From NCBI GenBank assembly GCA_002269645.1, contig NIVC01001875.1, positions 1 to 42,055 on the forward strand: a DNA stretch of 42,055 nucleotides, read 5' to 3'. A program made the position numbers and the translations under genes. The notes below the pieces were generated by a model. That model worked only from the letters and a program-made list of their open reading frames with translations. It did no database searches and was not told the origin of the DNA. The stretch comes from Macrostomum lignano. Lineage: Eukaryota. Position 1 is the first letter of the stretch, and every line of letters starts with the position of its first letter. Positions 1 through 25,700 of the stretch are shown one piece after another.

Positions 1-1100
1 AGATTTAATAACCTTCAGGAAGTACATCATCAGATTTAAATAACGCTTCAGGAAGTACATCATCGATTTAATCAACCTTCAGGAAGTACATCATCGGATT
101 TAACAACCTTCAGGAAGTACATCATCAGATTTAACAACCTTCAGGAAGTAGATCATCAGATTTAATAACCTTCAGGAGTACATCACAGATTTAATAACCT
201 TCAGGAAGTACATCAATCGGATTTAACAACCTTCAGGAAGTACATCATCAGATTTAACAACCTTCAGGAAGTAGATCATCAGATTTAATAACCTTCAGGA
301 AGTAATCTCATCAGATTTAATAACCTTCAGCAAGTACATCATCGGATTTAAACAACCTTCAGGAAGTCAATCATCAGATTTAACAACCTTCAGGAAGTAC
401 ATCATCGATTTAACAAACCTTCAGGAAGTACATCATCAGATTTAATAACCTTCAGGAAGTACATCATCGATTTAACAACCTTCAGGAAGTACATCATAAG
501 ATTTACAACCTTCAGGAAGTAGATCATCAGATTTAATAACCTTCAGGAAGTACATCATCAGATTTAATAACTTCAGGAAGTACATCATCGATTTAACAAC
601 CTTCAGGAAGTACATCATCAGATTTAACCAACCTTCAGGAAGTAGATCCTCAGATTTAATAACCTTCAGGAAGTATATCATCAGATTTATAACAACTTTT
701 CAGGAAGTACAATTATCAGATTTAACAACATCCAGGATAGTACATCAGATATAACAACCTTCAAGAAGTACATCATCAGATAAAACAACCTTCAGGAAGT
801 AAATCATCAAATTTAACAACCCCAGGAAGTTTACCATCAGATTTAACAACTTCAAGTAGTACATCATCAGATTTAACAACCTTCAGGAAGTTCACCATCA
901 GCTTTAACAACTTCAGGAAGTACATCATTCAGATATAAAAACCCTTCAGGAAGTACATCATCAGATTTATAACAACTTTCAGGAAAGTAGACCATCAGAT
1001 TTAAAAACTTCAGGAAGTACATCATCAGCTTTAAACAACCTTCAGGAAGTACATCATCAGCTTTAACCTTTAACAACATCAATCAGATGCAATGCAACAA
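1..1100. repeat. 31-bp minisatellite (agatttaac/taaccttcaggaagtacatcatc), intronic, runs off the left edge
   Basis: Unit at 1-31 recurs at 32 onward. Many 1-bp indels, and it decays towards 1100. Confidence 0.95.
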
Positions 1101-1248
1101 CCTTCAGGAAGCACGATGTACACTACGCGACATTTGGTCAAGTAAGCAAGACATTAAAAGTGCTCCTCAATTAGGTAAAGCTTTAGGAGGATTCGAGAAG
1201 AGTCGAATAGAAGCCAAACTAAGTCAGAAATAAACGCATCTCACTAAC

Positions 1249-2032
1249 CATGCTTAGCAGATTGGTACGGAGGCGAATCTCTAGATTTAAGCTGCTCCAA
1301 ATAGCGCTCAAAAGCGCCAAATTCCATAGCATTTTCAACGCAGAAGCTATCATCTTCTGTATCGTCCATTCCGTCCGCACCATTCCAGATCTCCGGCTCA
1401 GGAGCATCGTTAAAGTGCAACCCATCCTCGGACGAAACATCGTCCACCTGGCCTTCTCCAATTCGGCCATTATTAGTTGATAAGCGACCATTTCTATCTC
1501 TACCGTTGCTATTCGAATTAACAGAAGACGATTTAGATTGGGAAAATTCTACGTGCCTATCGATGCATTCCATCCATAACTGTACCGGGCGGTTACACAC
1601 GGTGGCTTCGCAGACCACATGGCACTGGTCTTTATAGGCTATGTAGATATCAGTGTCAGGCAAACGATGACGCAATGGCTGCAATCTGCGTATTAGACTC
1701 TCTGTTAGCACTCGCATCACCAAGGCGGAGTTGCTCGGCCCTATATAGGGTATTAGACGTGATTTAGTTCGACCCGGATATGGCAGTCGAGTGAACACAA
1801 CGATAGCCCTTCGAGATCTCTGAGTATTGTGAAACAGTTTCGCTACAGACTGAACCAGCGGAGCAAGAAATTGCAGAGTAACCAGCCAATTTAACAGCTG
1901 CACTGGCCAGCGACAAACGTGACCAGCCACTCTGACAGCGATGCGAATGGTTTCTATAGCAACTAGCCAGATTAGCAGCGCATAGGTGTGCAGCATGCTG
2001 CGCTTTCGTCTGAGCATAGAACCGTGCAGCAT
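1249..2032 (-). CDS. DUF2064/TIGR04282-family (CofC-like nucleotidyl/glycosyltransferase fold) protein, 5' coding exon; gene continues past the left edge
   Basis: AIVVFTRLPYPGRTKSRLIPYIG..SALVMRVLTESLI (from 1807 downward) matches the family N-terminal motif aliiFtr.P.pGktKTRLip.lG. ATG at 2032 has an in-frame TGA two codons upstream. A phase-1 donor G|GTTAGT lies at 1249/1248, just before the ORF stop. Confidence 0.75.
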
Positions 2033-2469
2033 GTTTCAAAACAAAATAAACTAATCAAGTTAGATTAGATTGATGCCTGCAATTTGAACCTTGGCTGACA
2101 ATGCTGCAAAATAATTCGGGTGGAGCGGGGGGGGGGGGGTTAAACTGACTATGGGTTTGAACTTCTGATGAAAATATGTAATGAACTTGTATGCAATGGT
2201 GAGCTCAGCACGCCTGTGTAGTATGAGACAAACCAGGCTTACAACCTAAGGTCTGCAACCCTGCACACCTGTACCCCCTCTATTATGGTGCAGGAATAGC
2301 AGAACTCTCCCAAGCTGACTCACAAGCCAACCCAGGGGTTCACATTCCACATGTGCTCAGGGCACCTCTAGGGCTGCTGGACTTGGCTTCTGTCTTGGCC
2401 ATATTGGGTGCCCAGAAGCAAACCTGTGTGTATCAAGGTATATCTGGCTATGGCTCTGAAGATCAGGAA

Positions 2470-2641
2470 CATGCTTGGGCGCAACCTAAGGATTCACCCG
2501 GCCGTTTCTATTGGCAACACACGCATGAAAGTCGCTATTGGACGGAATAGTAGTCACGTGACTGCTCTCAACCAATAGCGACTTACATGTGTGTGTTGCC
2601 AATAGAAACGGCCGAGTGATTCCCAAGGTTGCGCATGTATG
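2470..2641. mobile_element. Palindromic hAT-type MITE (172 bp)
   Basis: 8-bp direct repeat atcaggaa at 2462-2469 and 2642-2649. Arms 2499-2541 and 2572-2614 are reverse complements (2 mismatches in 43). The right end ttgcgcatgtatg matches the TIR of the 3961-4259 element. Confidence 0.75.
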
Positions 2642-3769
2642 ATCAGGAATCACCCCCTCTGACCTTAACAGGGTATGCAGCCAGTTTGCAGGTTCTAGAG
2701 ATAGCCTTCCTGTTGCCCTCAAGGGCCCAGTGTAGTACTGAGCTAACGGACTTAAGGTATGGCTTATAGTTTTTCCAAGCTTCTCAGTTGCTAGTGGTTA
2801 TACCAATAAGGGCCACAGATACTAAAATAACTAGATGAGCAACTCAGGCATATTATATATATATATATACTTAGTAAAATAGCATTTTTACTTTTAGTTC
2901 AATTGCAATGAAGAACACAAGCTATTTCATAAAAATAAAGGTACCTCAAATGACTGAACTATAAAATTGAAATTTTTTATTTCTACAAGTATTACTCGTA
3001 TAACTCCTTTTTAGTCATAATTTTGACTATAGATAACTATTTTGAGTTTCTTAATCTTATAAAGGTCTTGGTTAAGGGCTAAAAAATATCATATTTTTTT
3101 CGTTTTTTTAAGACTCAAGATCTATACTATTAAGACAATTGAGATTTGACCAAGATTTAAGATTAAGCCTAATTAGTATATAGTAGGTCTATTTATAATT
3201 AAATCTATTAATGCTAATATTTTTATTTTTTAAATATATACAATAATGATAATAGAAGAAAAAACAATGATAATTTAATATTGAGCTTGTTAATAACTTG
3301 ATATATTCATTTATACCCTTTAAATAAAAACTTTTTCTTCAAATATAAGTATAATAATATTATTCATAATCACAAAAAATCATAGTCATGATATAAATCA
3401 TAACTTTTTCTCAGGATCTTAAAGCCAAGATTGAAATTAAGTGAAGTGCTAAAATTTTAAGAATCAAGATTAAGATCTTGACTTGTCCAACCTCTAGTCT
3501 TATACTCTTAATGACCTACTTTCTATTATTTTCTATAGTTTTATATTGCAACAATCTTTAAACAAAAAACAATTTATTGAATAATCAATAAAATAACAAT
3601 AAGAAAACTATTAAAGTTTTAATTAGCTTTGCATAATTAATTTTAGTTTGAACTAGCAATCTTCGCCTACCAATGGGGACATCTGGATAGAATCTTTGTT
3701 CTTTACAAGTAACAAATAGACAGCAAAATAAAGCCTTCATAAAAAACAACAGATATTCCTTCTAAAAAC

Positions 3770-4690
3770 AAAACATCCCAAGACAGCAAGCATCCCCAGA
3801 CAGCATTCAAGCATTGATCCCCAAATAGCAAGCATCCCTCAGATTGCAAGCATCCTACAGATAGCAAGCATCCCCCAGCTAGCAAGCATCCTCCAGACCC
3901 TAGATAGCAAGCATCCCCCAGACTATAAGCATCCCCCAGATAGCAAGCATCCCCCAGATACATACATGCGCAATAGTCGGCCGAGTTGGCCAATCTGGCT
4001 GACCGATTTGGCGGCCAACCAAGGAAGTCGCAAAAATGCCCACCCAAAAAAATAACCCAAGTAGTAGTACTAAGTAGCTGACAAGGCATTTTGGCTTAAT
4101 AAGACAGTCATAGTTACTTCTGCCATTTACCCAAAGTTGCATTAATTTTGCTTTAGGGTTTTTTTACATGTAAGTTGCATTTTTGGCCAAAAACTATGTC
4201 GCATTTTTGTTAAAACTAAGTTGCATGGCTGACCGAATTATGGAAATTGCTCATGTATGCCCAGATAGCAAGCATCCCCCAGATAGCAAGCATCCCCCAG
4301 ATGGCAAGCATCCCCCAGATAGCAAGCATCCCCCAGATAGCAAGCATCCCCCAGATGGCAAGCATCCCCCAGATAGCAAGCATCTCCCAGATAGCAAGCA
4401 TCCCCCAGATAGCAAGCATCCCCCAGATAGCAAGCATCGCCCAGATAGCAAGCATCCCCCAGACTGCAAGCAACCTCAGATAGCAAGCATAACCTAGATA
4501 CAAAGAGACCTTATAGATATCTAGCAACCCCCTCTCAGATAGCAAGTACCCTCCACCCCCCAAAAGCAAGCATCTCCCAATAGCAGGTTACCCCAGTAGC
4601 AAGCATCCCCCCAATAGCAAGCATCCCTCAGATAGCAAGCATCCCCCTAATAGCAAGTATTCCATCCTTAAATAGCAAGCATCCACCAGA
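3770..4690. repeat. 18-bp minisatellite (agatagcaagcatccccc), interrupted by a MITE at 3961-4259
   Basis: Clear 18-bp period at 4261-4500. It generates the DSKHPP, QIASIP and LGDACY ORF artefacts. Confidence 0.95.
3961..4259. mobile_element. hAT-type MITE (299 bp) inserted in the 18-bp array
   Basis: TIR catacatgcgcaat / attgctcatgtatg (13/14). 8-bp duplication cccagata at 3953-3960 and 4260-4267. Subterminal gttgcat/gtcgcat motifs. Confidence 0.75.
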
Positions 4691-4739
4691 GAACAAGTAG
4701 CTAGTGCAATAATTTCCTTAGCTTTATAGTGGCTCCATT

Positions 4740-6460
4740 TTGTTTGGCATGATACTTCTTTTTATGTTTGAAATGTTGGCTCTTTAGTGTTTGACATGGT
4801 GGCTCTTCTATGTTTGACATGGTGGATCTTCTATGTTTGACATGGTAGCTCTTTAATGTTTGACATGGTGGCTCTTTAATTTTTGACATGGTGGCTCTTT
4901 AATGTTTGACATGGTGGCTCTTTAATGTTTTATATGGTGTCTCTAAGCCTCTTCTACATGTATGTTTGACATGGTGGCTCTTTTCTGTTTGACATGATAG
5001 CTCTTTAATGTTTGACATGGTGGCTCTTCTATATTTGACATGGTAGCACTTTAATCTTTGAAATGGTGGCTCTTTAATTTTTGACATGGTGGCTCTTTAA
5101 TGTTTGACATGGTGGCTTTTTTATGTTTGACATGGTGGCTCTTTATTGTCTTACATAGTGGCTCTCATGTTTGACATATTGGCTCTTATGTTTGACATGG
5201 TGGCTCTTTTATGTTTGACATTGTGCCTCTTTAATGTTTGATATGGTGCTTCTTTTTTGTTTGAAATGGTGGCTTTTTAATGTTTAACATAGTGGCTCTA
5301 ATGTTTGACATGGAGTCACATATATGTTCAACATGGAGTCACATATATGTTCGACATGGTAGCGCTTTTTTATGTTTGACATGGTGTCTCTTTAATGTTT
5401 AACTTGGAGTCACGTATATGTTTGATATGGAGTCATATATATGTTTGACATGAAGTCACTTATATTTTCAACATGGACTCACATATATGTTTGACATGGA
5501 GTCACGTATATGTTTGACATGTAGTCTCATATATGTTTGATATGGTAATTCTTTTATGTTTGACATGGTGTCTCTTTAATGTGGGACATGGTGGCTCTTT
5601 AATGTTTGACACGGTGGCTTTTTAATATTTGAAATGGTGGCTCTTTTATGTTTGACATGGAGTCATGCATTTGTTTGACATAGTAGCTCTTTTATGTTTG
5701 ACATGGTGGCTCTTTAATTGTTTGACATGGAGTCATGTATATGTTTGACATGTAGTCACGTATAAATTTGACTTAGTGGTTCTTTTATGTTTGACATAGT
5801 GGTTCTTTTATGTTTGATATGGTTGCTCTTTAATGTTTGAAATGGTGTCACATATATGTTCAATATAGAGTCAAGTATATATTTGACATGGCGGCTCTTT
5901 TGTGTTTGACATGATAGCTCTTTAATGTTTGACATGGTGGCTCTTCTATGTTTGACATGGTAGCACTTTAATCTTCAACATGGTGGTTCTTTAATGTTTG
6001 ACATGGTGGCTCTTTAATGTTTGACATAGTGGCTCTTTTATGCTTGACATGGTGGCTCTTTATTGTCTTACATAGTGGCTTTCATGTTTGACATGTTGGC
6101 TTTTATATTTGACATGGTGGCTCTTTTATGTTTGAAATGGTGGCTCTTTTAGGTTTGACATAGTGGCTCTTTTATGTTTGACATAGTGGCTCTTTTATGT
6201 TTGACATAGTGGCTCTTTAATGTTTGACATAGAGTCACGTATATGTTCAACATGGAGTCACATATATGTTCGACATGGTAGCTATTTTATGTTTGACATG
6301 GTGTCTCTTTAATGTTTGGCATGATGGCTCTTTTAAGTTTGACATGGAAGCTCTTAATTGTTTGACATGATGGCTCTTTTATATTTGACATGGTGGGGCT
6401 TTTTTATGTTTGACATGGTGCTACTTTTATGTTTGACTTTGTGCTTCTTTTATGTTTAGC
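4740..6460. repeat. ~22-23-bp minisatellite (atgtttgacatggtggctcttta) with a gagtcacatat subtype
   Basis: Repeated tttgacatggtggctc core. A variant block is duplicated at ~917-bp offset. Confidence 0.95.
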
Positions 6461-7260
6461 ATTTTTCAAGTGTTTTATTAAAAAAATCATTTTGCGCTAT
6501 TAAGATTCGAATCTAGGTCGCTACATTAGCAGTCCAGTCTGTTCGCATCTAGGCTATCTCTTTTCAATTGGAGAATATGAACTGTTGCCCTTATAATTCA
6601 ATTTTACAGCAAGTCAGTTAGTAAAAAGTTATGACATAATCAATATCTCAGTCGGCTAGTATCAATCTCAATTAAAGTTAGCAATACGAGCTCGTATTGG
6701 TTACGCAATTTAAATCAAGTTGTATATGCATTTCTTTGGCACTGTTTTCAACTTGTGATGTAATCTTTATCAGATTTGAAATTCAGTCAGTCAGGTTTTT
6801 TCTAGTATTCTTACAATGCATTTCAAGTCGAAAAATTTTTTTGACCTCTGCAAAAGAGCATGTTTTTCGAATATTTAATCTGTTTAACATTGATAAATTT
6901 CTTAGCCAAGATGCATGTACTGCCCTAGGAAAATTTCTGATTGAATGGTGCAAGTTTGAAGAAAATAAATTAAGCTGTTTTTTCTGAAATCAATCGCATA
7001 CCCATATATATACATATACAGACAACTCATTTTTAGTATATTGGACTAGCTGGGGTAGGCTGTCTGCCAGTATCCAGAATTTTTATTATACCCCCCTTAA
7101 TTGGTTACACAAGTTAAATAGAGTAATTATCTAGGCAGTGAGGCAGAGTGAGTTTTCTTATCAGTTGGCTCTGGCACAATCATTAAAATTGACTGTGAAG
7201 TTTCTTGCTGATAAAATTTGCATTGAAAAACCCCATTTAAAACAGTTTTTCAAATATTTA

Positions 7261-7500
7261 ATCCCTTTAGCAATGAGCTAGAGCTTAATGAAAATGCATG
7301 TACCGTCCTGGGCACATTTGACATCTTTTGGTGAAGAAACGAAGAAAATCAGTTAAGCCATTCAGGAGAAAATCGATTTAATTCCTTTAGCAATGAGCTA
7401 GAGCTTAATAAAAATGCATGTACTATACTGGGCATATTTGACATCTTTTGGTGAAGAAACAGATAAAATTGGTTAAGCTATTCAGAAGAAAATTGATTGC
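7261..7500. repeat. 120-bp tandem duplication, with a related degenerate copy near 6890-6995
   Basis: cctttagcaatgagctagagcttaat...gacatcttttggtgaagaaac occurs at 7261-7380 and 7381-7500. Confidence 0.85.
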
Positions 7501-10500
7501 GTACAAGCAAGCAAGCAAGCAATTTTTTCATTTTTAGAATATTAATTAGAGATTTAGTATATTTAGATGAAGAATTGCTCTCTCTAGAGTGTTATGGACA
7601 TTCAAGCAAGCAAGCATACAAACCTTAGAGATTTAGTATATTTACACTATAGATTTGTACAAGTGACTATCAAATAACATAGAAAGTATTATTTGGCATG
7701 CCGCATTGCCGCATGGCAAGCCTAGGCCTATATGAATATAAACTTATAAAAATTATGTAAAACAAACTACAACATTGTTGTTTTAGTCAAGAAAACAACT
7801 AAATAAACTTATCTATTGCATTTAAGCCTACTTTATAAGAGAAAAAATGAAATTAAATCCTAATGGCATTGGTTTTACTTTTAGTTTATATTTGTTTCAT
7901 TTGTTAGCTTGCCATATATAACTAGGTAGGGTATAACTTTTTTAAGGCATTTACTAATTTTCAAAAGTAAAGACTAAAGTAGGCCTATCTTTTTAATTTT
8001 AGGCCTAGCCTACTTTTATCTTTTAATGAGACTTGAATAAAATGGAAAAATAGTAGGCCTAGGCCTAGCCCTAGCCCCTAGCTAGGCCTAGGCCTACTAA
8101 ATAAAAATAACTCAAAAATCACATTGGAATCTCTAGGTCTAGGACTCCAGGCTAAACAATAGTAATGAATAGGGGCCTACCTAATAAAGAGGTCAAAAAG
8201 ATCTTAGCCCTAATCTTGATCTTGTCTTAGGGCTATCGCCCTATTTAAGTCCTCTTGAAAATTGACTTCTTCTTCTTGATTGTAGATTTATATTTTTTAA
8301 GATGTAAGTTTTTTATCTAAAATTCCACTCCCTAGCAATATTTTACTAATTAACTCTAGTAGCCTTGTTCGTACATACACATCAGTACTGCAAAGTGGAA
8401 GACTAGTGACGTGTAGGCCTAGAATATTAGGCATAGCTTAGTTATGTATTTATGTTATTCACGTCATTAGTCATTTGAACTTAACTCAAGGAGTCACCGA
8501 CAGTTCATTGATCACCCATGGAGTACATGCATAGTATTTGGAGGTCTAATGGTTCCTAAGGATTTATATATGGCTAGATTTTTTGACCTGGCTGGGCACC
8601 TAAACTAGACATGCGTAGGGTGCGTGTTATGCAAAATTTTCACCTAGGCTCAGATAGCTAGCTAGCTTGGAGCACGCTCTAACTTGGGTAGTCCGTGCAC
8701 CCTTAACTGAAAATTTTCTAGACTTAATGCGAAGTGCATGCGCACTGTGATAAAAATTAACGCAAAACTGCTCCGGGCCGTAACTTTGTTTATTACGCTC
8801 ATTATAAGTAAATATTAAAGCATTTAGCCTAAAAACGTTGAATTAACACTAAAATTTAATTAAATTAACTGTTTTAAACTATAATTACTGTTAATATAGA
8901 CTGTTTTTGTCGGCATGCTAGGTTTAAGAAAGCGTTGTACTAAATTTAACCTGCTCAAAAAGGCAGCTTTTAAAATATAATCGTCGTACTTCGTACTTGT
9001 AGACTTCTTGTTGTTATTGTAAATGAAATTGCTTTGGACCTTTACTGTGATCCTCTCGCTTTTCTCCGAAAAGAAAAAATCAGGATTTTTTCGTTTAGTT
9101 CAGCGACTTTTCTCTCCATTTGCTTTAATTGATTTTTTGCGAATGATAGGGCTCTTAATGTTAGTGTTAGGCTTACTTAATATAGACCTTGCCATACTCG
9201 TACTCTCTCAGGATTTCTGAATTAAAATCACAAGAAGCTTAACCTTTACCCAACTATTTTTATGTATGAGGTATATAGACAAATCTTAAATCCGATTTTA
9301 TTGTACCTTGTATTGTTCTTTTTGTCAGCTAGGAATCATACATAGCATCACTTCATATCTATCTTGCATCTAATCCAGACTAGAGAATAGATTAGTATAA
9401 TTTGAACTTATGGTATTAATTTTGATTTGTTTTGTCAATATTAAACTATGTGGAGGTTCACTCAATGTTGCACTTTTGGCCCTATTATTGTACTTTATAT
9501 ATTTCTCAATTTAGATATAGCTAGTAACCCATTGGATTGCATTGATTGAAAACATAAAACTTTCTTATCTATTATGCATCTTTATCAGACTAGACTTTAA
9601 GTTTAACAGTCAGTCAATTAAGTTTCTTGTGATTGAACTATATAAGGTGCAAATAAGTTAAACTACAACACACTGGTACAATCTGTATGCAATGTTTTAT
9701 TTATAATATTTTACTTAAGGCAATAAAACTATGGTCATATTGATTAAAATAAGTAACTTTCCAATCATAAATATTATAAATTAAAAATGGCAACATTGGA
9801 TAAACATTTATATTTCCCAGGCCTAATGCTTTCTATTCAGTAATTAAGAAATTTGGTATTGAATTCCGAAGAATATATTACTTATAAATTATTATTTTAA
9901 ATCATACATAAATGTTACTACTTGTAGCCATAACAAGGCTCGCGTATCAGTAAAATTTTATGATAGAATACTAGCATCGTTTTAAGATTTTACCATAAAA
10001 AAACAGACCTGTTGCAGTGTACAGCTTTTGCAGCAGTATAAGTAAACAGCATCTTGTGGCGAATCATAAGTTCGTAAAAATCTTGTAATGATTAATCAGA
10101 AATTAACTGAGATGAAGTGACGCCCAAAGTTGACATTCAATACTTTGCTAGCCGCCTATCTTTAGAGATGTCCAACAATGTGGGCATTTAGCTGACTGAA
10201 TTATAATGACTAATTGGCCCCATCGTACGTCGACCTGTGATAATCGGCACTCTTATCAGTTCCAATGGACAAGATCAAACCAGAGCCAGAACGTGTACAC
10301 CCACACACCCACAGACACACGCAGCTAAACATAATGCAGAATGAAGTCGCCTTGGCAAAGGAATTGTGTCTAATTTTAGTCATGCTATGGCTAAACACTA
10401 AAGAGGTAACAGAATCTCTATCGTTCCTTTATCCAACCCGTGTATATGCTCTATACGCAATCTCTTATCTACGAATTAAGCTAAGTCCCTCTATTTGCCC

Positions 10501-10665: not shown

Positions 10666-10954
10666 AATTGTAGGCGTTTATAGCAGAAGAGCTTTCTAAT
10701 TTTCCAATAACCGATACTAGAATAGCTTGAAATATTTCAGCTTTTCCCTGGCAAGCTACACCGCATGAGAAGACCTGCAATAAGAACTCAACGGCTATAG
10801 AAATCCATTTTTTCGCAATTTCTCCGCAAACATGACTGGATAGATTTTATTTAGCAACGCCTCCTATTGAGAGAAGAGCAAAAGTCTTCTCTTGTTCGAG
10901 ATTTTGTTTTGCTCTGATTTTTCTTCTTCCGTCATTGTTGAACCAAGCACCGGC

Positions 10955-13900
10955 ATGGCCGACATCACAATGCGACTCATCTGGTACCGGCTGAACGAAC
11001 TCTATAATAGTACGTCGGAACAACTGGCCGGTACAGATCTGGCTAAATTAGACGTCCTTGACCTGCTGTTTGTCGGCTGGTGCCTATTCGGCATTCTCGC
11101 CGTTGTCATAATCAATTTTATCTACGAATTGGTTCATCCAAAGCAGCAACAACAGAAACAGACGGTTGGCAATAAGAAACAGGAGAGCCAGCACGTGACG
11201 CCAGTGCTTCTGCGATCCAAACAGACTCCGCCTGTTCAGCAGAATGGGCCGCTGAGCTCCATCGACGAGTTGATTGAACCGAACTCATCAAGCGCAGAGT
11301 CCTGCTGCTGGCTCAACACTCTGGTTGCTTGGCTGTTTCTGAATAGAAGCGGCGCTCCAGCCCTGCTAGAGGCCTGGCTCAGCGCACTGAACTATGCGCT
11401 ATCCAAAGAGAAGCAATTTGATGGACGAGTGAGTGTCACGAATATTAGCCTTGTCTGTTTTGTTTATCGTATCGGGGTTTCTTCAGTTTGCAACCAACTC
11501 TACCTTATGGTTCTGTTTCTGATTGTCAGATTTTCATTTCTTTTAGTTCAGGTTGCTCCACATTGATCTAGTTTGATTCCGGTTCATCTAGTTTGATTCC
11601 AGTTCATCAAGTTTGATTCCGGTTCATCTAGTTTGATTCCGGTTCATCTAGTTTGATTCCAGTTCATCAAGTTTGATTCCAGTTCATCAAATTTGATTTC
11701 GGTTCTTCAAGTTTGATTCCGGTTCATCTAGTTTGATTCCAGTTCATCAAGTTTGATTCCGGTTCATCTAATTTGATTTCGGTTCATATAGTTTGATTCC
11801 GGTTCATCTAATTTGATTCCGGTTCATCAAGTTTGATCCCGGTTCATCTAATTTGATTTCGGTTCATCATGTTTGATTCCGGCTTATCAAGTTTGATTCC
11901 GGTTCATCTAATTTGATTTCGGTTCATCAAGTTTGATTCCGGTTCATCAAGTTTGATTCCGGTTCATCTAATTTGATTTCGGTTCATCAAGTTTGATTCC
12001 GGTTCATAAAGTTTGATTCCGGTTCATCTAGTTTGATTCCGGTTCATCAAGTTTGATTCCGGTTCATCTAATTTGATTCCGGTTCATCAAGTTTGATTCC
12101 GGTTCATTAAGTTTGATTCCGGTTCATCTAATTTGATTTCGGTTCATCAAGTTTGATTCCGGTTCATCAAGTTTGATTCCGGTTAATCAAGTTTGATTCC
12201 GGTTCATCTAGTTTGATTCCGGTTCATCAAGTTTGATTCTGGATCATCAAGTTTGATTCCGGTTCATCAAGTTTGATTCCGGTTCATCAAGTTTGATTCC
12301 GGTTCATCAAGTTTGATTCCGGTTCATCAAGTTTGATTCCGGTTCATCAAGTTTGATTCCGGTTCATCTAGTTTGATTCCGGTTCATCAAGTTTGATTCT
12401 GGATCATCAAGTTTGATTCCGGTTCATCAAGTTTGATTCCGGTTCATCAAGTTTGATTCCGGTTCATCAAGTTTGATTCCGGTTCATCAAGTTTGATTCC
12501 GGTTCATCAAGTTTGATTCCGGTTCATCTAATTTGATTCCGGTTCATCAAGTTTGATTCCGGTTCATCAAGTTTGATTCCGGTTCATCAAGTTTGATTCC
12601 GGTTCATCAAGTTTGATTCCGGTTCATCAAGTTTGATTCCGGTTCATCAAGTTTGATTCCGGTTCATCAAGTTTGATTCCGGTTCACCATGTTTGATTCC
12701 GGTTCATTAATTTTGATTCCGGTTTATCAAGTTTGATTCCGGTTCATCAAGTTTGATTCCGGTTCATCAAGTTTGATTCCGGTTCATCTAGTTTGATTCC
12801 AGTTCATCAAGTTTGATTCCGGTTCATCAAGTTTGATTCCGGTTCATCAAGTTTGATTCCGGTTCATCAAGTTTGATTCCGGTTCATCAAGTTGATTCCG
12901 GTTCATCAAGTTTGATTCCGGTTCATCAAGTTTGATTCCGGTTCATCAAGTTTGATTCCGGTTCATCTAATTTGATTCCGGTTCATCAAGTTTGATTCCG
13001 GTTCATCAAGTTTGATTCCGGTTCATCAAGTTTGATTCCGGTTCATCAAGTTTGATTCCGGTTCATCAAGTTTGATTCCGGTTCATCAAGTTTGATTCCG
13101 GTTCATCAAGTTTGATTCCGGTTCATCAAGTTTGATTCCGGTTCATCAAGTTTGATTCCGGTTCACCATGTTTGATTCCGGTTCATTAATTTTGATTCCG
13201 GTTTATCAAGTTTGATTCCGGTTCATCAAGTTTGATTCCGGTTCATCAAGTTTGATTCCGGTTCATCTAGTTTGATTCCAGTTCATCAAGTTTGATTCCG
13301 GTTCATCAAGTTTGATTCCGGTTCATCAAGTTTGATTCCGGTTCATCAAGTTGATTCCGGTTCATCAAGTTTGATTCCGGTTCATCAAGTTTGATTCCGG
13401 TTCATCAAGTTTGATTCCGGTTCATCATGTTTGATTCCGGTTCATCAAGTTTGATTCCGGTTCATCAAGTTTGATTCCGGTTCATCTAATTTGATTCCGG
13501 TTAATCAAGTTTGATTCCGGTTCATCAAGTTTGATTCCGGTTCATTTAAAAGTTTATCTCTGGTGCATCCAGGTTGCTTCCGACTTCTCTATATTTCCTT
13601 CTATTTGGCTTCCATCTAATTTATTCATTATGATTCTGAAAAAGTACTCTTTTCAAACGTATTTTTAAGCTAGATCCTAATCTGGTTGATTGCAAAAGCG
13701 AGCATAGAGAGTAAATTCTTCACCCGGCTTGAAATAAAGAGTCCTTAACAAGAATTAGGTACACGTTTATTACAGCGTGCTAATTCTTCCACATGCACCC
13801 TGTTACCATGCATAATTAACTGGGCTGCCGCCAGATAAACCCTACAATACTGTAACGTGTGTAGTTCTGATAGAAAGAAAACGGACTTGAAAGAGTTTTT

Positions 13901-16738: not shown

Positions 16739-19700
16739 GTAGCTCGTGAAATTGATTTTTCCCTGTGTTAGTTGAACACCGTGCATGGGCCCGGTGACGC
16801 TATAGCTAGCTAGTGCGGGGTGATTTTGGCACTTTAGGTTTCTAACAGCCTTAGAAACCTGTGTTATTCAGGCTAACGGATTAGAGAAGGCCAGCTTGTA
16901 AAGTTAGGAATTAGAAGTATTAAATGTAGTAGTACAGTGTAAATTTATGGACAATATGTCATAATTACTTTACTAAATAATTTACCAAGCTTAGTAAATT
17001 GAATTTGGATTAAAATCCAAGGGGAAATTTCTTTTTTTTTCAAGGGAATTCGTTAGGAAACATACAAAAATAGGTGATGCCCTATATTCTGTTGTGGCAT
17101 TGTATCTTATATCCTGATGTGGTGTCCTATATCCTGATGTGGTGTCTTATATCCTGATGTGGTGTCTTGTATCAAGCTGTGATAGATAACATCCTCCTGA
17201 AGGGGAGGCTTATGCTATATAGTGTGTTTTGGATACACACTCAACTGATAGCTTCCATCCTAAGGTGGTAGCTTCCACCCTGAGGTGGTAAGTAGCTTCC
17301 ACCCTGAGGTGGTAAGTAGCTTCCATCCTGAGGTGGTAAGTAGCTTCCATCCTGAAGTGGTAAGTAGCTTCCATCCTGAGGTGGTAGCTTCCACCCTGAG
17401 GTGGTAAGTAGCTTCCACCCTGAGGTGGTAAGTAGCTTCCATCCTGAGGTGGTAAGTAGCTTCCATCCTGAGGTGGTAAGTAGCTTCCATCCTGAGGTGG
17501 TAAGTAGCTTCCATCCTGAGGTGGTAAGTAGCTTCCATCCTGAGGTGGTAGCTTCCACCCTGAGGTGGTAAGTAGCTTCCACCCTGAGGTGGTAAGTAGC
17601 TTCCATCCTGAAGTGGTAAGTAGCTTCCATCCCTGAGGTGGTAAGTAGCTTCCACCCTGAGGTGGTAAGTAGCTTCCATCCCTGAGGTGGTAAGTAGCTT
17701 CCATCCTGAGGTGGTAAGTAGCTTCCATCCTGAGGTGGTAAAGGGGGGGGGGCAAAGTCGCCTGTCTCTACACAAAAACTTATGTACGCATTAATAGCTA
17801 GTAAATCTCATTGTCTTGGAAGCTAGAAACGCCTATTCTATCACAAACTATAATATAGGTTGAAGTACAAGAGTACATTATGCGAGATCGAAAAATCACA
17901 AAGTGGCTTATCTTATAATGCTCGACCCGGGGTCCGGAATTAGTAAATCATTCAATGCACCTGTACACTTGACGTCGTTCAGGTCCATTTTGCTCATATT
18001 AGTTTATCGATTCAAAATTAAATTATTAACTGAAAAAAATTGCATTAAAACTATCAAGTTCACTTATTTCTGACACTATTTCAATGCGCATACAGAGCCT
18101 TGTATTCGAGGACATCATTGTGGGCGACACTCCTCCGGAGATCGTTTCGGTGCGCGGATCTCAAGGTGACGATTTGCATAATATGGTAAGTATTTGCTTA
18201 GGGGAGGGGCGGCTATCTTTTATGGTTTGACTACCTCTGTAGCTACAAATCTAGTAGGTGTTACTTATACATATGAGTGAGATACTGCAGAGCGGCTGTT
18301 GGGTGTGATACCACTAGAAAGTGATAATGGTTCAGACACTGAAGCGTGTAATACATAAGGGTTGAGATACTGGGTGGTTGAGACACTGGGTGGTTGAGAC
18401 ACTGGGTGGTTGAGACACTGGGTGGTTGAGACACTGGGTGGTTGAGACACTGGGTGGTTGAGACACTGGGTGGTTGAGACACTAGGTGGTTGAGACACTG
18501 GGTGGTTGAGACACTGGGTGGTTGAGACACTAGGTGGTTGAGACACTGGGTGGTTGAGACACTAGGTGGTTGAGACACTGGGTGGTTGAGATACTGGGTG
18601 GTTGAGACACTGGGTTGTTGAGACACTGGGTTGTTGAGACACTGGGTGGTTGAGACACTGGGTGGTTGAGACACTAGGTGGTTGAGACACTAGGTGGTTG
18701 AGACACTAGGTGGTTGAGACACTGGGTGGTTGAGACACTAGGTGGTTGAGACACTGGGTGGTTGAGACACTGGGTGGTTGAGACACTGGGTTGTTGAGAT
18801 ACTGGGTGGTTGAGACACTGGGTTGTTGAGATACTGGGTGGTTGAGACACTGGGTTGTTGAGACACTGGGTTGTTGAGACACTAGGTGGTTGAGACACTG
18901 GGTTGTTGAGACACTGGGTTGTTGAGACACTGGGTGGTTGAGACACTAGGTGGTTGAGACACTGGGTGGTTGAGACACTGGGTGGTTGAGACACTAGGTG
19001 GTTGAGACACTGGGTGGTTGAGACACTAGTTGGTTGAGACACTGGGTGGTTGAGACACTGGGTGGTTGAGACACTAGGTGGTTGAGACACTGGGTGGTTG
19101 AGACACTAGGTGGTTGAGACACTGGGTGGTTGAGATACTGGGTGGTTGAGACACTGGGTTGTTGAGACACTGGGTTGTTGAGACACTGGGTGGTTGAGAC
19201 ACTAGGTGGTTGAGACACTGGGTGGTTGAGACACTGGGTGGTTGAGACACTAGGTGGTTGAGACACTGGGTGGTTGAGACACTGGGTGGTTGAGACACTG
19301 GGTGGTTGAGACACTAGGTGGTTGAGACACTGGGTTGTTGAGATACTGGGTGGTTGAGACACTGGGTTGTTGAGACACTAGGTGGTTGAGACACTGGGTG
19401 GTTGAGACACTGGGTTGTTGAGACACTGGGTTGTTGAGACACTGGGTTGTTGAGACACTAGGTGGTTGAGACACTGGGTGGTTGAGACACTAGGTGGTTG
19501 AGACACTGGGTGGTTGAGACACTGGGTTGTTGAGACACTGGGTTGTTGAGACACTAGGTGGTTGAGACACTGGGTGGTTGAGATACTGGGTGGTTGAGAC
19601 ACTGGGTTGTTGAGACACTGGGTTGTTGAGACACTAGGTGGTTGAGACACTGGGTGGTTGAGACACTAGGTGGTTGAGACACTGGGTGGTTGAGACACTG

Positions 19701-22700
19701 GGTGGTTGAGACACTGGGTGGTTGAGACACTGGGTGGTTGAGACACTGGACGGTTAAGACACTGGGTGGTTGAGACACTGGACGGTTAAGACACTGGGTG
19801 GTTGAGACACTGGACGGTTGAGACACTGGACGGTTAAGACACTGGGTGGTTGAGACACTGGGTGGTTGAGACACTGGGTGGTTGAGACACTAGGTGGTTG
19901 AGACACTGGGTGGTTGAGACACTAGGTGGTTGAGACACTGGGTTGTTGAGACACTGGGTGGTTGAGACACTGGACGGTTGAGACACTGGACGGTTAAGAC
20001 ACTGGGTGGTTGAGACACTGGGTGGTTGAGACACTGGGTGGTTGAGACACTAGGTGGTTGAGACACTGGGTGGTTGAGACACTAGGTGGTTGAGACACTG
20101 GGTTGTTGAGACACTGGGTGGTTAAGACACTGGACGGTTGAGACACTGGGTGATTGAGACGCTGGGTGGTTGAGACACTGAATGGTTTAACTCTAGATCG
20201 CATGCTAATAGAGTTTAACTCTAGAGAACATGCATACTACGAGTTCAGGGTGGTATACCATACTGCACTTTTGTTTATAAGTAATACTTCCTGCGCAATT
20301 CGAAAATAAAATCAGGAGTTACTGCTCGATGTGCGCGCGGCAGAAGTCAGACTGAAGGTTCGCCTGTCCCGACTGGAAGCGTGCGAGGTCATTCTGAGCG
20401 AAATTGTGGCCCAGGTAATTGTTATATATAGTTCTTTCAAAGTGTAAATTCTCTAAACGTTACTATTAGTTAGGAAAAATGCGCAGTTCTGTCACAAAAA
20501 GTCATTTTCAGGCGATTTTTCTGTCTACATAAAACGCAATAGAAACACGAGCGTATACGAGCCGTACGCGTCTGCAGTCAAAGTGTGACTCAGTATAGCG
20601 ATTTTTCTTCACTAATTAGAACTCTGGGGATTGCTTTCAAACTTTGAAGACGCTTTTTGCCAATTAGTTTCCGCTACAGTGTTGACAGCTGCAACGGGCG
20701 GGATGTTCTCGTCGGTCGGTTTTTGTTTTGTTCGCTTGTAGTTTGTATACTCGTAGTATTCCCCTGGCTGTGTGCTTCGTGAAGTGTCAAGTTATTAGCA
20801 TAGGGTTATTTCAGTCTCCCAAGGAGAAAAGCATTGCTGAATGATAAATTCGAATCTTTAGGCTCCTAATTAGATGCGTAGGGTGACCTATTGAAATTCG
20901 TCAGAGGGTTATGTAACAGCTATCAAGTAGATTAGTGCGGTACTGCATTGATTAGTCAAGTCGATTGATTCAGCACCTCATCGACTTGTCAAGTAGATCG
21001 ATTTGGTACCTCATCGATTAGTCAAGTAGATTGATGCGGTACCGCATTGATTAGTGAAGTAGATCGATTTGGTACCTCATCGATTAGTCAAGTAGATTGA
21101 TGCGGTTCCGCATTGATTAGTGAAGTAGATTGATGCGATACCTCATCGATTGATTAAGTAAATACGGTACGTCATGTGCGAAATCGAGAAATCAAGTAAA
21201 TTTTCATCTCCGTCGACTGTTATTCAGGTGTCCGCCGACTTGCGCCTCTGCCCCGAAGGATTCAAAGGCTCCCTACGTCTAGTTGAGCGGCCAAAGCTTC
21301 GCTCCGAGGTGGTCCTGGTCGGCAAGCCATCGTCTACAGGGGCGGCTGCAGCAGCGACGGGAAGCTACGCTTGGATAGCCGAGGAGGTAACCACGGCTGT
21401 CAGTCAGGCCGTCACTGAGATCTTCCTGACTGACAGCGAGCGAAACAGCGGCTCCGGAAGTCCGCACCTGCAGCCGCCAAGTCGATCGTCCGCAGTTAGC
21501 GGCTGCTTCGAGTTCGGTCCAGGTGGCCAGTCAGCGTCCGCTGCGGTCAGTAGACGAGACAATGCCAGCCAGACGACGTCTTTACCACCGTTGCCTCCAT
21601 CAACATCGTCGACGGTAGCCGCGGCTGCTGCAGTCGCTGCTGCTGCAACTGTAACAGCTGTTGTGGCACCGACAGGTGACGCTAAAAATGGCGTCCCAAT
21701 AAGCGACGATAGTTCGGTGAGATTTTTTCATTGCTTCGGTCCATAGCTATGGATATTTGAAATCGGCCGTTTAAAATTTTCTTTAGCTCAAATGCTTCAG
21801 GCATAGTCTACTAATACTAAAACTCTAGCGATGTTTGTCTGTTTGTTTGTTGCAGTTTTTCTCCTAGACTACTGGCAACTCAGCGTCGAAACTTATATGG
21901 GGAAACTGCATGGAATTTCAGGTGATGGATTTCAGGAAATGGAATTCCGATGATGCGAGTTCTTCCTCTTTCTTTTCCGAAGGAGGAGTTCCACTCGTTC
22001 TTTTTCTATAATTAAGTAGAAGTGCGAGCGTAATTTAGTACAACCGTATGCTGTAAACTGACTTTTCTATTGATTGATAATCTGCTACTTTGATATTAAA
22101 GCTTTATAACTGAGGCTCCAAGTAGCAAAGAAGTTTATGCATCGACGCTTCCAAATCTGCACATTTTCTGTTGCAATTAATGGCTTGAAGTTTCTATTCA
22201 GTCATAAAAAATGTTAGCAGAAATTTTCAAGCTGCAGGGGGGTCGCAAAAAACACTTACTTTTTATTGCAGTGCAGCTAATGGAGCGTGAGGAATTGGGT
22301 TGCAAAGAATGCTTTGCTTGTACAATTTCGTCAAACTTTCTTCAACCAGGTCTTGTGCCTTCATCTTGCGTATAATAGTCGCACTTGGGACATAGTAACA
22401 TTTTTTACCCTGAGGAATCGATGTGCAGCAGATTTTATGATCAGATTTTTAAGTAAACATCTAAATGGCGCCGATTGTTAGTAGCTACGACTTCATGCGG
22501 CAAAACTTTCAGCTAAAGATTCGAATAACACTTAGATATTCCGTTTTTAGGGAGCTGGTGTGCTATACCTTTCGCTTATATCTCGGATTGCTTTTTGTTT
22601 TTACCAGTTCTTTGTGTACATTTAACGGTAGTTTTTTAAAGTAAGTTGTAGCCTTTATGGGCTCTCAACGAGTCCGGTTTTTTCAATTCATCTTTCCGGC

Positions 22701-25700
22701 TCTCAACAAGTCCCGTTTCGGGGTTTTCAAAGCATCTGTTGGACTTTTAAGGCTGTCAACGAGTCCAATTTTTTTGTTTCTCAGTGCATTTGTCGGACTT
22801 TTGAGACTCTGAACGAGCCGATTTTAAGTTTTTCGATGAATCTGTAGGAATTCTGGGACTCTCAACGACTTGTGTTCTTAGTTTCTAACAGCAGTTTCAA
22901 ATACCGGTAGCTCGCAGTACGGCTCTTAACGTTATCATTACGTCAGTTTCTCTACTTTTGGGCTCTCGGCCCTATTTCTAGGAAAGTTGTATTAGTATTT
23001 TATAGTTCTGACTCCAAAACGACAAATGATGAAAGGCTCATTTTAAAACATTATTTTCGCAGCTTAAAATTCAGAATGAATCCCTCTTTCTCTTTTAAAT
23101 TTTTTTCTAAACAGGTTGGTATCAAAGAGACCGTCAGCAGGCGCGAGAACCGGCCCAATACGGTTAGTAGAGAACCTCAAAAACAGCCGCAAGCCGTGAA
23201 CGGATCCGGCCCTAACTCAACCAGTCTGTTAATAAAGCTGATCAAAGCCACCGGACTCAAGCCCGGCATTAACGCTATGCCGCTTAATCCGTTTGCATGC
23301 GTTGAGCTGGACGAGCCTTATCAACGTCACGTGACTGGCAGCGTGTACGGCTCCGCGAATCCCTATTGGGATCAGAGCTACATGCTGTGAGTGGCTTAAA
23401 CAGTTGGGGGTAGTCAGCCATATTTGGAGTCGGATTTATTTATAGTCGCATAGGGAGCCATTTAAGGTGAGGCATTAGAATAACTTATCATAACATTTCC
23501 ATCGCCAGAGCAAACATCAACTTGTTCTCGAATGCATAGAAATTTTATCGACTCCAAACTGAGCTTTGTGTAGCAACAAATCTGCAGTGTATTATTTATA
23601 CTTGAATCGAGGAAATTATTCATGTAGTAAATAGTAGTCCTCAAAATAGAATATGACTGGCAACCCAACAATCACAGGACGCTATAACCATGACAGACTC
23701 GCACACATACATGTAAATTAGTACTGACATAATTTCTTCATTCTGAACCCCATCGCAGAGACCTGACGCCTCAGTCCAAGCGTCTATCGCTTCACGTATT
23801 CGACCGAACCAACCAATCCGATTTACTGCTCGGCTCGGCCAGCATCCTTCTCGACGACCTACCGTCCCAGGGGGCCCGCGTCATCCAGCCGCTTCGAATG
23901 CCGCGACGCGACACAGCCGCCTCGTCGTCGGTTCAACCGCCAACGTTGACCGCTGAATTACTCTTCGTATCAGCGGCAGCTCCTTCCACAATGGCGGGGA
24001 ACAGCAGCGGTAGCAACAGCAACAGGTTCGCAGGACCTCGAGCGGCCAGTGTGTCTAGCGTATCCGCAGAGTCGGCTGTTACAGTCGTTCACGTGTCTCC
24101 CAACAGCGCGCATCGTAGCTCAGGCGTCGGCTCGTCGCCGGAATCGGACGAGTCAATGGTCGTTTTGACTTCGTTGGAAGCGGCAAAGTCAAGGACGACG
24201 CCAGCTGCGGCGTCTGCCGACCAACTGGAACAGCAGCAGCAACAGTCAGGAAAGAAACAGAAAACTGACGGGACCAGTGAGTGTTTAGTTAATAATTTTG
24301 AATATAGTGAACGAGGCAAAGCAGATCCCCCGTCCCTGAGCAAACATGCACACACAGGTGCGTACGCAAGCACACTCTCACATATGGGTGTACAAAACAT
24401 CTTGTCGGATTCCGGCATAAAAAAACTTATGTGGACTGTTTGTCAAGCATCGTCCTCTAGATCGTAATTTTTTTGCTTTTAAATCTTATGTGGTCCGAAG
24501 GTTGGACGAACTGCAAGCTGCTGCAATATTTTGCAGCGACAAAATAATCCATCCATCGCGATAAATGTTTAAATTCCAGGTCGACGTCAATCAATGAGTG
24601 TGACACAGTTATAAATACATTAAAAATAAATTCAGTGGCCTAGGCAGGGCATAACCCCTTAAAAAGCGCTTCTCCAAAAGCTTTTGTCACCTCTCGGACG
24701 AGGCCACAAACTGGCTTAGGAGTCAAAGATAGAGACGCTCACAGAGAGGCTGGGCGCCTACCTCTAGGAGATGAAGAGCTAGTATTTCGTTAATTTTATT
24801 AACAATCGATGAAACAAGCCGCGCTAAACAACAACAACAACAACAGGCATTCGTAGGCAGGCCTCGTTGCCAAAGACTGTGCACTTCAGCGAACCGTCGT
24901 CGCTGAACAGGGTCAGTTCCGTTGCTGGACCGAGTGGCGGCACCAAGTCAGCTCGAGAAGCTGCTACAGCCGCGGAAGCCGCGGTGCCAGCTGCTCAGGA
25001 AGAGACGTCTAGCAATGCAGAGAAATCTGCATGGAAGCAGTCGGTTAAACGCTTCCTAGATCGGTCCTGTAGGTCGCACTTCCTATGCCAGTGAAAGCTA
25101 CTGATTAAGTAGCAAAATATGCGAATTTTGTCTGAATTTACAGCTTTCTGGAGGAGTAGATTTTCTTATTTTAAAATCAACTTTAATTCCTTGGTGCTTG
25201 GAAGCAGGTTCGCGACCGGATGTCTAATTCGTTGAAAATTGATTGTGGTTTCCACTTAAAATTCGAAAATCTTCCACAAACAAACACCTAGAGAACTGAT
25301 AGAATGTACATGTACTAAATTAAGCTTATAAGTACCTCATAAGTTTACTCGTTAGTTTAATTCTAGGAGCACTTTTTACAGCTTTGGTGACTTTTTGAGC
25401 TTCATCTGCTTTTATTATTATATAGTTGCCTCTGCTATTGCCAAACTTTCTCTGCTTGTTGCATGTAAAAATGTGATACATGTAAATCAACAACAGACTG
25501 AAGAGTTCCCATTTCAAACAATCCAAACAGATTCTTCACTGTCCCGTACTGTCGACGAGTTCATGAAGTCAACGGACGTCTCCTACCAGCCGATGAGTTC
25601 AACGGACAGCGCCGCGAGTCAGCAGCAGCAGCAACCATCGTTCTCTGGCGTGGCTGATTCGCCGCCTAAAAAGCCACCACCAATTCCGCTTCATCATGGC

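Follow-up and report, generated by a model that had tools for sequence, protein, structure and literature searches.

The window analysed here is a 42,055-nt stretch of the genome of the flatworm Macrostomum lignano (assembly GCA_002269645.1, contig NIVC01001875.1, positions 1 to 42,055). We conclude, with a probability of about 0.8, that its segment 2032..1249 (minus strand) forms the first coding exon of a nuclear gene that is functional, has six exons and encodes a two-domain transferase of 714 amino acids (aa); this reading explains the data best as a whole. By sequence comparison, the gene is the flatworm's divergent orthologue in a family that marine Spiralia and Ambulacraria have conserved. 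Because the family is conserved in both groups, the gene was already present in the protostome-deuterostome ancestor and has been patchily kept since.

The open reading frame (ORF) at 1244..2032 (minus strand) encodes 262 aa, with its ATG at 2032, its stop at 1244 and an in-frame stop codon close upstream of the ATG. Over residues 1-261 it is identical to a 714-aa M. lignano protein in GenBank (PAA49238.1/PAA51690.1, BOX15_Mlig000337g1/g2; here P0001), which continues with an Asp completed by exon 2 (G|AT). As P0001 runs on across a phase-1 intron in this way, the exon 1/intron 1 junction is confirmed. The exon ends at 1249 in the context AAGCATG|GTTAGTGA, that is G|GTTAGT at 1249/1248, which on its sequence is a good splice donor. 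The motif AIVVFTRLPYPGRTKSRLIPYIG corresponds to residues 76-98 and lies at 1807..1739. A first-pass annotation made from the sequence alone had placed the motif at these positions within a 784-nt exon ending at a splice donor, and the ORF, the donor context and P0001 bear this out; the figure of 784 nt covers the coding part of exon 1 and leaves out the 5' untranslated region. In exact look-ups, neither the 262-aa ORF nor the Ptychodera and Lingula proteins described below matched any record.

Exact spliced mapping in two sister contigs (L001 and L002) gave six exons separated by five GT-AG introns, located after residues 261 (phase 1), 333, 404, 495 and 622 (all four phase 0), so that the same annotation was right to describe an intron-bearing gene in an aquatic animal. 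Exon 1 of the window is nucleotide-identical to both sister contigs, and the window is collinear with one of them, NIVC01003939 (L002), at 99.1% over 11.7 kb. A 10-residue variant of P0001, PAA81193.1, is encoded at a third M. lignano locus. Intron 1 measures 2.3-2.7 kb in L001 and L002, and the window fits several registers of their satellite array. The window reaches from exon 1 into intron 1, of which it has the first 1248 nt, while exons 2-6, which encode the remainder of domain 1 and the whole of domain 2, lie past its left end. The features of the gene in the window are the following.

1249..2032, minus strand: coding part of exon 1 (784 nt; residues 1-261 and the first base of codon 262), 100% identical to P0001 residues 1-261.
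1808..2032, minus strand: N-terminal hydrophobic region, residues 1-75, with two predicted helices, a likely membrane anchor (AlphaFold2 and hydropathy).
1625..1807, minus strand: first beta-alpha-beta unit of the DUF2064/TIGR04282 GT-A-like domain, residues 76-136, including FTRxPxPGxxKxRL (1739-1807) (TIGR04282 profile; predicted local distance difference test, pLDDT, ~90).
1249..1624, minus strand: first three quarters (residues 137-261) of a flatworm-specific insert (137-302), predicted to be disordered (alignment; pLDDT ~30).
1247..1248, minus strand: GT splice donor of intron 1, phase 1 (sequence context and mapping in the sister contigs).
1..1248, minus strand: 5' part of intron 1 (first 1248 nt), with a 31-bp satellite at 1-1067 (TRF).

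The first-pass annotation had assigned the exon to a DUF2064/TIGR04282-type family. Exon 1 alone matched the NCBIfam profile TIGR04282 (E 2e-7, 31 bits), its residues 77-138 aligning with positions 1-58 of the 189 in the profile; the score is far under the curated cut-off of 134 bits, as is to be expected of a fragment. Pfam gave no match with exon 1 alone. The full-length protein passed the Pfam gathering thresholds of both PF09837 (DUF2064; 41.9 versus 25.8) and PF00535 (Glycos_transf_2; 44.7 versus 23.3). Together the profile matches uphold the family assignment, which for exon 1 is above chance on its sequence. A fused TIGR04283/GT2 domain, likewise predicted, was found in the downstream exons, with TIGR04283 matching at residues 451-704. 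The oyster orthologue scored above both curated cut-offs (TIGR04282, 165.1; TIGR04283, 191.5 against a cut-off of 182). An HMMER scan of 1.84 billion representative proteins with exon 1 returned one identical protein (residues 1-261) and 28 weaker matches, all at query positions ~53-164; we retrieved seven of the 28, and five of these were DUF2064-GT2 fusions (three bacterial-type, two bivalve). The sole sequence match to the exon in the PDB was the DUF2064 structure 3CGX, which matched weakly at residues 73-121 (E 0.41). In a word-indexed homologue search exon 1 alone found no match, and residues 319-714 found two, both bacterial GT2 proteins.

We modelled the 714-aa protein with AlphaFold2 on an alignment of 55 sequences (mean pLDDT 76, predicted TM-score 0.70). 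The pLDDT exceeded 90 at residues 75-136 and 303-711 and was ~30 at 137-302, and the N-terminus formed two long helices (3-36 and 41-71). By this model, exon 1 encodes a hydrophobic hairpin, beta1-alpha1-beta2 of domain 1 and most of a disordered loop. In the predicted structure, one chain carries two GT-A folds. Foldseek searches of the PDB with the model returned tandem GT-A enzymes (K4CP, LH3, LARGE1, heparosan synthase), single GT2 enzymes (WrtF, TarS, TarP, PcManGT) and 3CGX, the last matching domain 1 (303-446 together with 75-136, pLDDT >90) at E 5.8e-12 and TMt 0.76. The insert at 137-302, ~165 aa rich in Ser, Ala, Gly, Asp and Asn, has no counterpart in any of the other animals and bacteria aligned and is predicted to be disordered; at its site the other animals have two or three residues more than bacteria.

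A single N-terminal hydrophobic segment was present in eight of ten other animal orthologues checked and absent from the four bacterial proteins checked. Seven of the eight carry a strongly basic cluster (net +4 to +8) behind this segment and a neutral or acidic flank on its N-terminal side. The flatworm protein is probably membrane-tethered, as judged from its own hydrophobic N-terminus. Because of the basic cluster behind the anchor, the positive-inside rule would place the catalytic part of most orthologues on the cytosolic side. We propose that domain 1, of the CofC/MobA-like nucleotide-binding GT-A group, may bind or activate a nucleotide-linked substrate, and that domain 2, a GT2 domain with HAD as its DxD equivalent, may pass a group of glycosyl or ribosyl type on to an acceptor at a membrane surface. 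The fusion of the two domains suggests two consecutive steps on one substrate. The N-terminal loop of domain 1, encoded in exon 1, is the most conserved motif of the family (FTRxPxPGxxKTRL). It is present in the flatworm as VFTRLPYPGRTKSRLIP (residues 79-95, window ~1798-1748) with Ser in place of T91, and the columns of F80, R82, P84, G87, K90, R92 and L93 are nearly invariant across the 55 sequences.

Searching with the oyster homologue, we found fused full-length proteins in bivalves (oysters, mussels, clams, scallops, Solemya, Pinctada and the freshwater mussel Potamilus). Fused orthologues also occur in the gastropods Haliotis and Patella, the brachiopod Lingula, the nemertean Tubulanus, the hemichordate Ptychodera, the sea star Asterias and the sea urchin Lytechinus. 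The animals recovered were without exception aquatic and almost without exception marine. The animal matches were followed by bacterial and metagenomic fusions only, at 33-40% identity to the oyster query; no vertebrate, arthropod, nematode or non-animal eukaryote was among the best 120 matches listed, in a word-indexed search that can miss divergent orthologues and that missed the flatworm protein itself. The protein of Tubulanus polymorphus (P0059) carries at residues ~470-591 an acidic tandem-repeat tail (…DVSRGGE(A/T)DV…) that is absent from all other orthologues.

The oyster, sea star and nemertean genes have ten introns each at common alignment positions, and the phases agree at nine of these positions. 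An Ank+BTB gene stands head-to-head with the transferase gene, directly upstream of it, in both oyster and sea star. Exon for exon, the two Ank+BTB genes are homologues (tblastx, 12 collinear segments, E 2.7e-105), and their sharing of this position places the transferase gene at that genomic site before the protostome-deuterostome divergence. The Ank+BTB gene spans 591-9677 of the oyster locus (L003) and 1630-8493 of the sea star locus (L005), forming a mollusc-echinoderm microsynteny block. It is absent at the nemertean locus.

A neighbour-joining tree of 15 animals and 90 bacteria (431 columns) had a split (bootstrap 0.80) that kept all animals, Macrostomum included, on the same side. Deuterostomes, molluscs, and Lingula with Tubulanus formed groups within the animals, each weakly supported. 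With the GT2 half alone the animals including Macrostomum were again recovered (bootstrap 0.88). We also looked for animal-only columns, defined as those with a residue in 11 or more of 14 animals and a gap in 90% or more of the bacteria. There were 29 of them at 11 sites, and Macrostomum has residues in 26 of the 29.

Taken as sequence evidence, these results fit best with an old bilaterian gene that was patchily retained. Ahead of the protostome-deuterostome split, bacteria may have passed the fused gene to an early animal lineage: an older bacterial transfer is suggested by the fusion common to animals and bacteria, the animal-bacterial identity of ~36-40% and the lack of other eukaryotes among the best matches listed. 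The first-pass annotation had left a choice between a domesticated horizontal acquisition and a patchily retained gene. Orthologues, common introns, the Ank-BTB neighbour, the tree and the insertions favour patchy retention and speak against a recent or lineage-specific transfer, and the tree and the orthologues point to vertical inheritance across animals, the pattern that the annotation itself had set against its horizontal option.

That the gene is functional in the flatworm is suggested by its paralogues. Their coding sequences differ at 28 synonymous and 11 non-synonymous positions, giving a pN/pS (ratio of the proportions of non-synonymous and synonymous differences) of 0.127 (binomial P 6e-10), from which both copies are under purifying selection. 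Region by region, pN/pS came to 0.083 for the folded C-terminal part and to 0.14 for the insert, the counts being small; the part of the insert in exon 1 (137-261) accounts for 10 synonymous and 5 non-synonymous differences. Introns 2-5 are 88.8-93.0% identical between the paralogues over their aligned parts. The GenBank gene models of the M. lignano assembly were built from RNA-seq transcript assemblies (PMC5730564), which is indirect evidence that the flatworm gene is transcribed. The oyster orthologue was found as an uninterrupted coding sequence on a 1.9-kb Logan contig, in a cluster of 227 member sequences.

Several observations weigh against the reading given at the outset. The full-length protein stays under both curated cut-offs, with 91.1 versus 134 for TIGR04282, in two pieces (77-138 and 308-431), and 147.4 versus 182 for TIGR04283 (residues 451-704), and it differs at 22 of 84 strongly conserved columns (at least 90% in bacteria), where other animals differ at 6-19. 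TIGR04282 itself is a 'hypoth_equivalog' in NCBIfam, and the literature searched reported no assayed enzyme or established biochemical function for either TIGR04282 or TIGR04283. None of the five flatworm introns coincides with the conserved ten, the second being only 3-4 alignment columns off, and the flatworm locus is without the Ank-BTB neighbour and shows no synteny with other animals. With the DUF2064 half alone, the animals including Macrostomum did not come out as monophyletic (bootstrap 0.33). Neighbour-joining was the only tree method, and Macrostomum sits on a very long branch, left unbroken because the searches brought up no close relative among flatworms. The anchor of the flatworm protein is atypical, a longer two-helix region and not one segment, and the membrane topology is derived from hydropathy and the positive-inside rule alone.

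Some of these points could also mean that the flatworm copy is a selected pseudoenzyme or has been neofunctionalised, its insert giving a new role such as scaffolding. Nine replacements occur in the flatworm only (G338S, D369S, Y372L, G376A, E481Q, G488R, Q535M, F550V and D621S), at positions conserved in 14 of 14 other animals and in at least 90% of bacteria. DGGYYL has become SGGLYL through D369S and Y372L, whereas D and Y are kept in all 14 other animals, and among the TIGR04283 motifs G488R and D621S (YGDQ to IGSQ) are altered. The first-pass annotation had expected the motifs Q..gDLGeRM and iGsD.P in downstream exons. The exons exist, and both motifs are degenerate in them: at the first the flatworm has QSGCTIGATLES, keeping Q310 and G316 and replacing D, L, R and M, and at the second (GxDxP) it has SSDVP, with the invariant D340 and P342 kept and G338S. 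The site of the first motif is in exon 2, outside the window, and its Asp is variable in other animals as well. The scores under the family cut-offs and the 165-aa disordered insert with its low pN/pS fit a changed role too, and with nine conserved residues lost, including D369 and D621, the chemistry of the protein may be altered or reduced. On the other side, the flatworm keeps all 18 columns that are invariant in 55 of 55 sequences, including D340, D424, D426, D486, D491, H552, D554, E644 and D645. The other residues of the TIGR04283 motifs are kept (N458 E459; D486 S489 D491 T493; H552 D554; E644 D645; S668 R670 R671 W672), the fold is predicted at high confidence, and D369 and D621 are not known to be catalytic. 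We regard a selected pseudoenzyme or a neofunctionalised protein as a serious but less likely alternative; an active but diverged enzyme is the likeliest reading of the sequence.

What such an enzyme might make was approached through bacterial gene neighbourhoods. We surveyed 80 bacterial loci (41 fused, 39 split) and clustered the neighbours within 8 kb. The radical SAM (rSAM) protein ArsS (TIGR04167, 454.6 bits) occurred at 8 of the 80 loci, five of the eight being fused. A membrane protein of the VTT/TVP38 family and a MerA-like FAD disulfide oxidoreductase (NF004991) were each found at 17 loci. At least one of the three was present at 25 of the 80, with frequent co-occurrence, VTT/TVP38 and MerA-like proteins standing together at 11. 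The last two (at L013, L019-L022, L035, L042, L043, L049, L079 and L083, among other loci) are the commonest neighbours across bacterial phyla, ahead of ArsS. ArsS was not found within 6 kb of the gene in two named bacteria.

Aquatic and marine animals accumulate organoarsenicals, and the gene might catalyse an endogenous arsenosugar or selenium-sugar step in marine invertebrates, an activity that the first-pass annotation had raised as a possibility for an aquatic invertebrate. The aquatic, nearly all marine, distribution of the animal genes and the eight bacterial loci with ArsS point in this direction. The product of ArsS, 5'-deoxy-5'-dimethylarsinoyl-adenosine, is an intermediate needing further glycosyl chemistry (PMC13598754), which loosely makes a downstream glycosyl or ribosyl transferase plausible. 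In contrast, 72 of the 80 bacterial loci have no ArsS nearby, VTT/TVP38 and MerA-like neighbours are commoner, and the literature searched reports no assay of an enzyme of either family. At the animal loci examined the neighbours are unrelated and none is an rSAM gene. The 'arsenosugar' naming of the family in NCBIfam is by association. On this analysis we consider an endogenous arsenic or selenium step unlikely. The more specific proposal, that a fusion of bacterial ancestry kept since before the protostome-deuterostome split, nearly exclusively in aquatic and for the most part marine invertebrates, would be a membrane-bound step making or remodelling 5'-deoxyribosyl (arseno- or seleno-sugar) conjugates, is a speculation to which we give low odds. 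If it were true, part of the organo-arsenic chemistry of marine animals would be endogenous and not dietary or microbial.

A different history for the gene would be a recent, lineage-specific transfer from a bacterium into Macrostomum or the flatworm lineage, followed by domestication through intron gain. A pairwise identity of the flatworm protein to bacterial fusions (up to 34%) that is roughly level with its identity to other animals (28-32%), intron positions unlike those of other animals and the failure of the DUF2064 half to group Macrostomum with animals would agree with it. Against this stand the position of Macrostomum with animals in the whole-protein and GT2-half trees (0.80 and 0.88), its residues at 10 of the 11 sites where animals carry insertions missing from at least 90% of bacteria, and an N-terminal hydrophobic extension, which most of the animal orthologues checked have and the bacterial proteins checked do not. 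A long-branch artefact, moreover, would draw Macrostomum towards bacteria and not towards animals. We infer that the differences in introns and neighbours reflect the rapid genome and intron turnover of flatworms, and regard a recent transfer as very improbable beside old descent within animals.

Bacterial contamination or mis-assembly, which the overwhelmingly bacterial make-up of the family in databases might suggest, is hardly credible and was rejected, given the five GT-AG introns, the 31-bp satellite inside intron 1, the same structure on three independent contigs, paralogues 5% diverged at synonymous sites, and the C2-domain and DIX/CH-domain genes, eukaryotic neighbours that flank all three genomic copies.

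The remainder of the window is rich in repeats. The 31-bp satellite AGATTTAACAACCTTCAGGAAGTACATCATC at 1-1067 comprises 34 copies in the window with ~85% matches and fills most of intron 1; it runs on in L001 (~11250-13240) and L002 (~11000-12700), and the window ends within the array. An inverted repeat at 2479-2541 / 2572-2634, with 63-nt arms that are 90% complementary and separated by 30 nt, is located ~450-600 bp upstream of the ATG and could be an element resembling a miniature inverted-repeat transposable element or a promoter-region hairpin. Further tandem arrays with periods of 16-50 bp and up to 114 copies were found at 3819-4690, 4760-6457, 11566-13545, 17249-17741, 18360-20180, 28636-29282, 35367-35959 and 39957-41171, and several of them yield long spurious ORFs in two or three frames. 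The strong GC skew at 18360-20180 is due to a 16-bp array there.

Divergent from the transferase gene, a C2-domain gene lies at ~10900-11566 and ~23226-23387 on the plus strand. It is annotated with 917 aa in L001 and 781 aa in L007, the 5' ends differing, and the ORF 22911-23387 has a weak Pfam C2 match (E 0.0018). On the minus strand, 39624-39896 is an exon-like ORF for the C-terminal region of a trypsin-type serine protease with GDSGG (Pfam Trypsin, E 2.3e-7, profile 156-220 of 220). Pfam found nothing in the other long ORFs of the window, most of which are translations of tandem repeats, and Rfam gave no match over the whole window.

The flatworm protein is a divergent addition to a known family, and the sequences are already in databases, where the GenBank and UniProt records read 'hypothetical', 'uncharacterized' or 'Glycosyltransferase 2-like domain-containing'. 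The literature searched yielded no animal-relevant paper on the family (DUF2064, TIGR04282/3, PF09837), on ArsS in eukaryotes or on horizontal gene transfer in Macrostomum. The gene is conserved, intron-rich and under selection in at least six animal phyla, and it is a clean candidate either for an ancient gene that model organisms have lost or for a very old transfer from bacteria to animals. As M. lignano is amenable to transformation and to RNA interference and oysters are easy to sample, whether marine animals make their own organo-arsenic or organo-selenium compounds is directly testable in tractable species. Transformation of M. lignano has been described (PMC5730564). Should the chemistry be ordinary glycosylation, the interest would be mainly evolutionary. 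We saw no mechanistic surprise, and the value of the finding lies in a conserved marine-invertebrate enzyme family with a testable link to organo-arsenic chemistry.

Among known systems, the TIGR04282-TIGR04283 fusions of many bacteria, such as Chrysiogenes arsenatis, Bremerella volcania and Baaleninema sp., have the same two domains in the same order as the flatworm protein. They are named 'arsenosugar biosynthesis glycosyltransferase' and were formerly 'rSAM/selenodomain-associated transferase 1/2'. They have a common motif set (FTRxPxPGxxKTRL, GxDxP, WG, DVD, NE, DGxSxDxT, HAD, ED, TSxRRW) and are 28-34% identical to the flatworm protein and 33-40% to the oyster protein. The bacterial fusions checked are 420-460 aa long, with no N-terminal hydrophobic segment and no introns, whereas the flatworm protein has an extra 75-aa hydrophobic N-terminus and the 165-aa insert and has lost D369, Y372, G488 and D621.

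The animal orthologues (for example Magallana gigas XP_019918188.3, Mya arenaria XP_052781881.1, Lingula anatina, Tubulanus polymorphus, Ptychodera flava, Asterias rubens and Lytechinus variegatus) have in common with the flatworm protein the fusion, the N-terminal anchor, the animal-specific insertions and the tree clade. Unlike it, they are 490-590 aa long, reach or come near the curated cut-offs and keep the conserved aspartates; the flatworm gene in turn differs in its five differently placed introns, other neighbours, huge insert and very long branch.

Of structures, 3CGX, a putative nucleotide-diphospho-sugar transferase of Desulfovibrio desulfuricans G20, matches domain 1 but is single-domain and soluble. 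CofC/MobA-like proteins (PF01983, PF12804) have a common Rossmann-like GT-A fold with an N-terminal phosphate-binding loop. Some family members give weak CofC and NTP_transf_3 matches; the flatworm protein has no significant CofC match and no sign of guanylyl-transfer chemistry. The tandem GT-A enzymes K4CP (2Z86), LARGE1 (7UI6) and heparosan synthase (8VH7) are the top Foldseek matches over both domains, but at 10-16% identity, TM-scores of 0.2-0.3 and a root-mean-square deviation of ~16 Å they resemble the flatworm protein in architecture and not in family.

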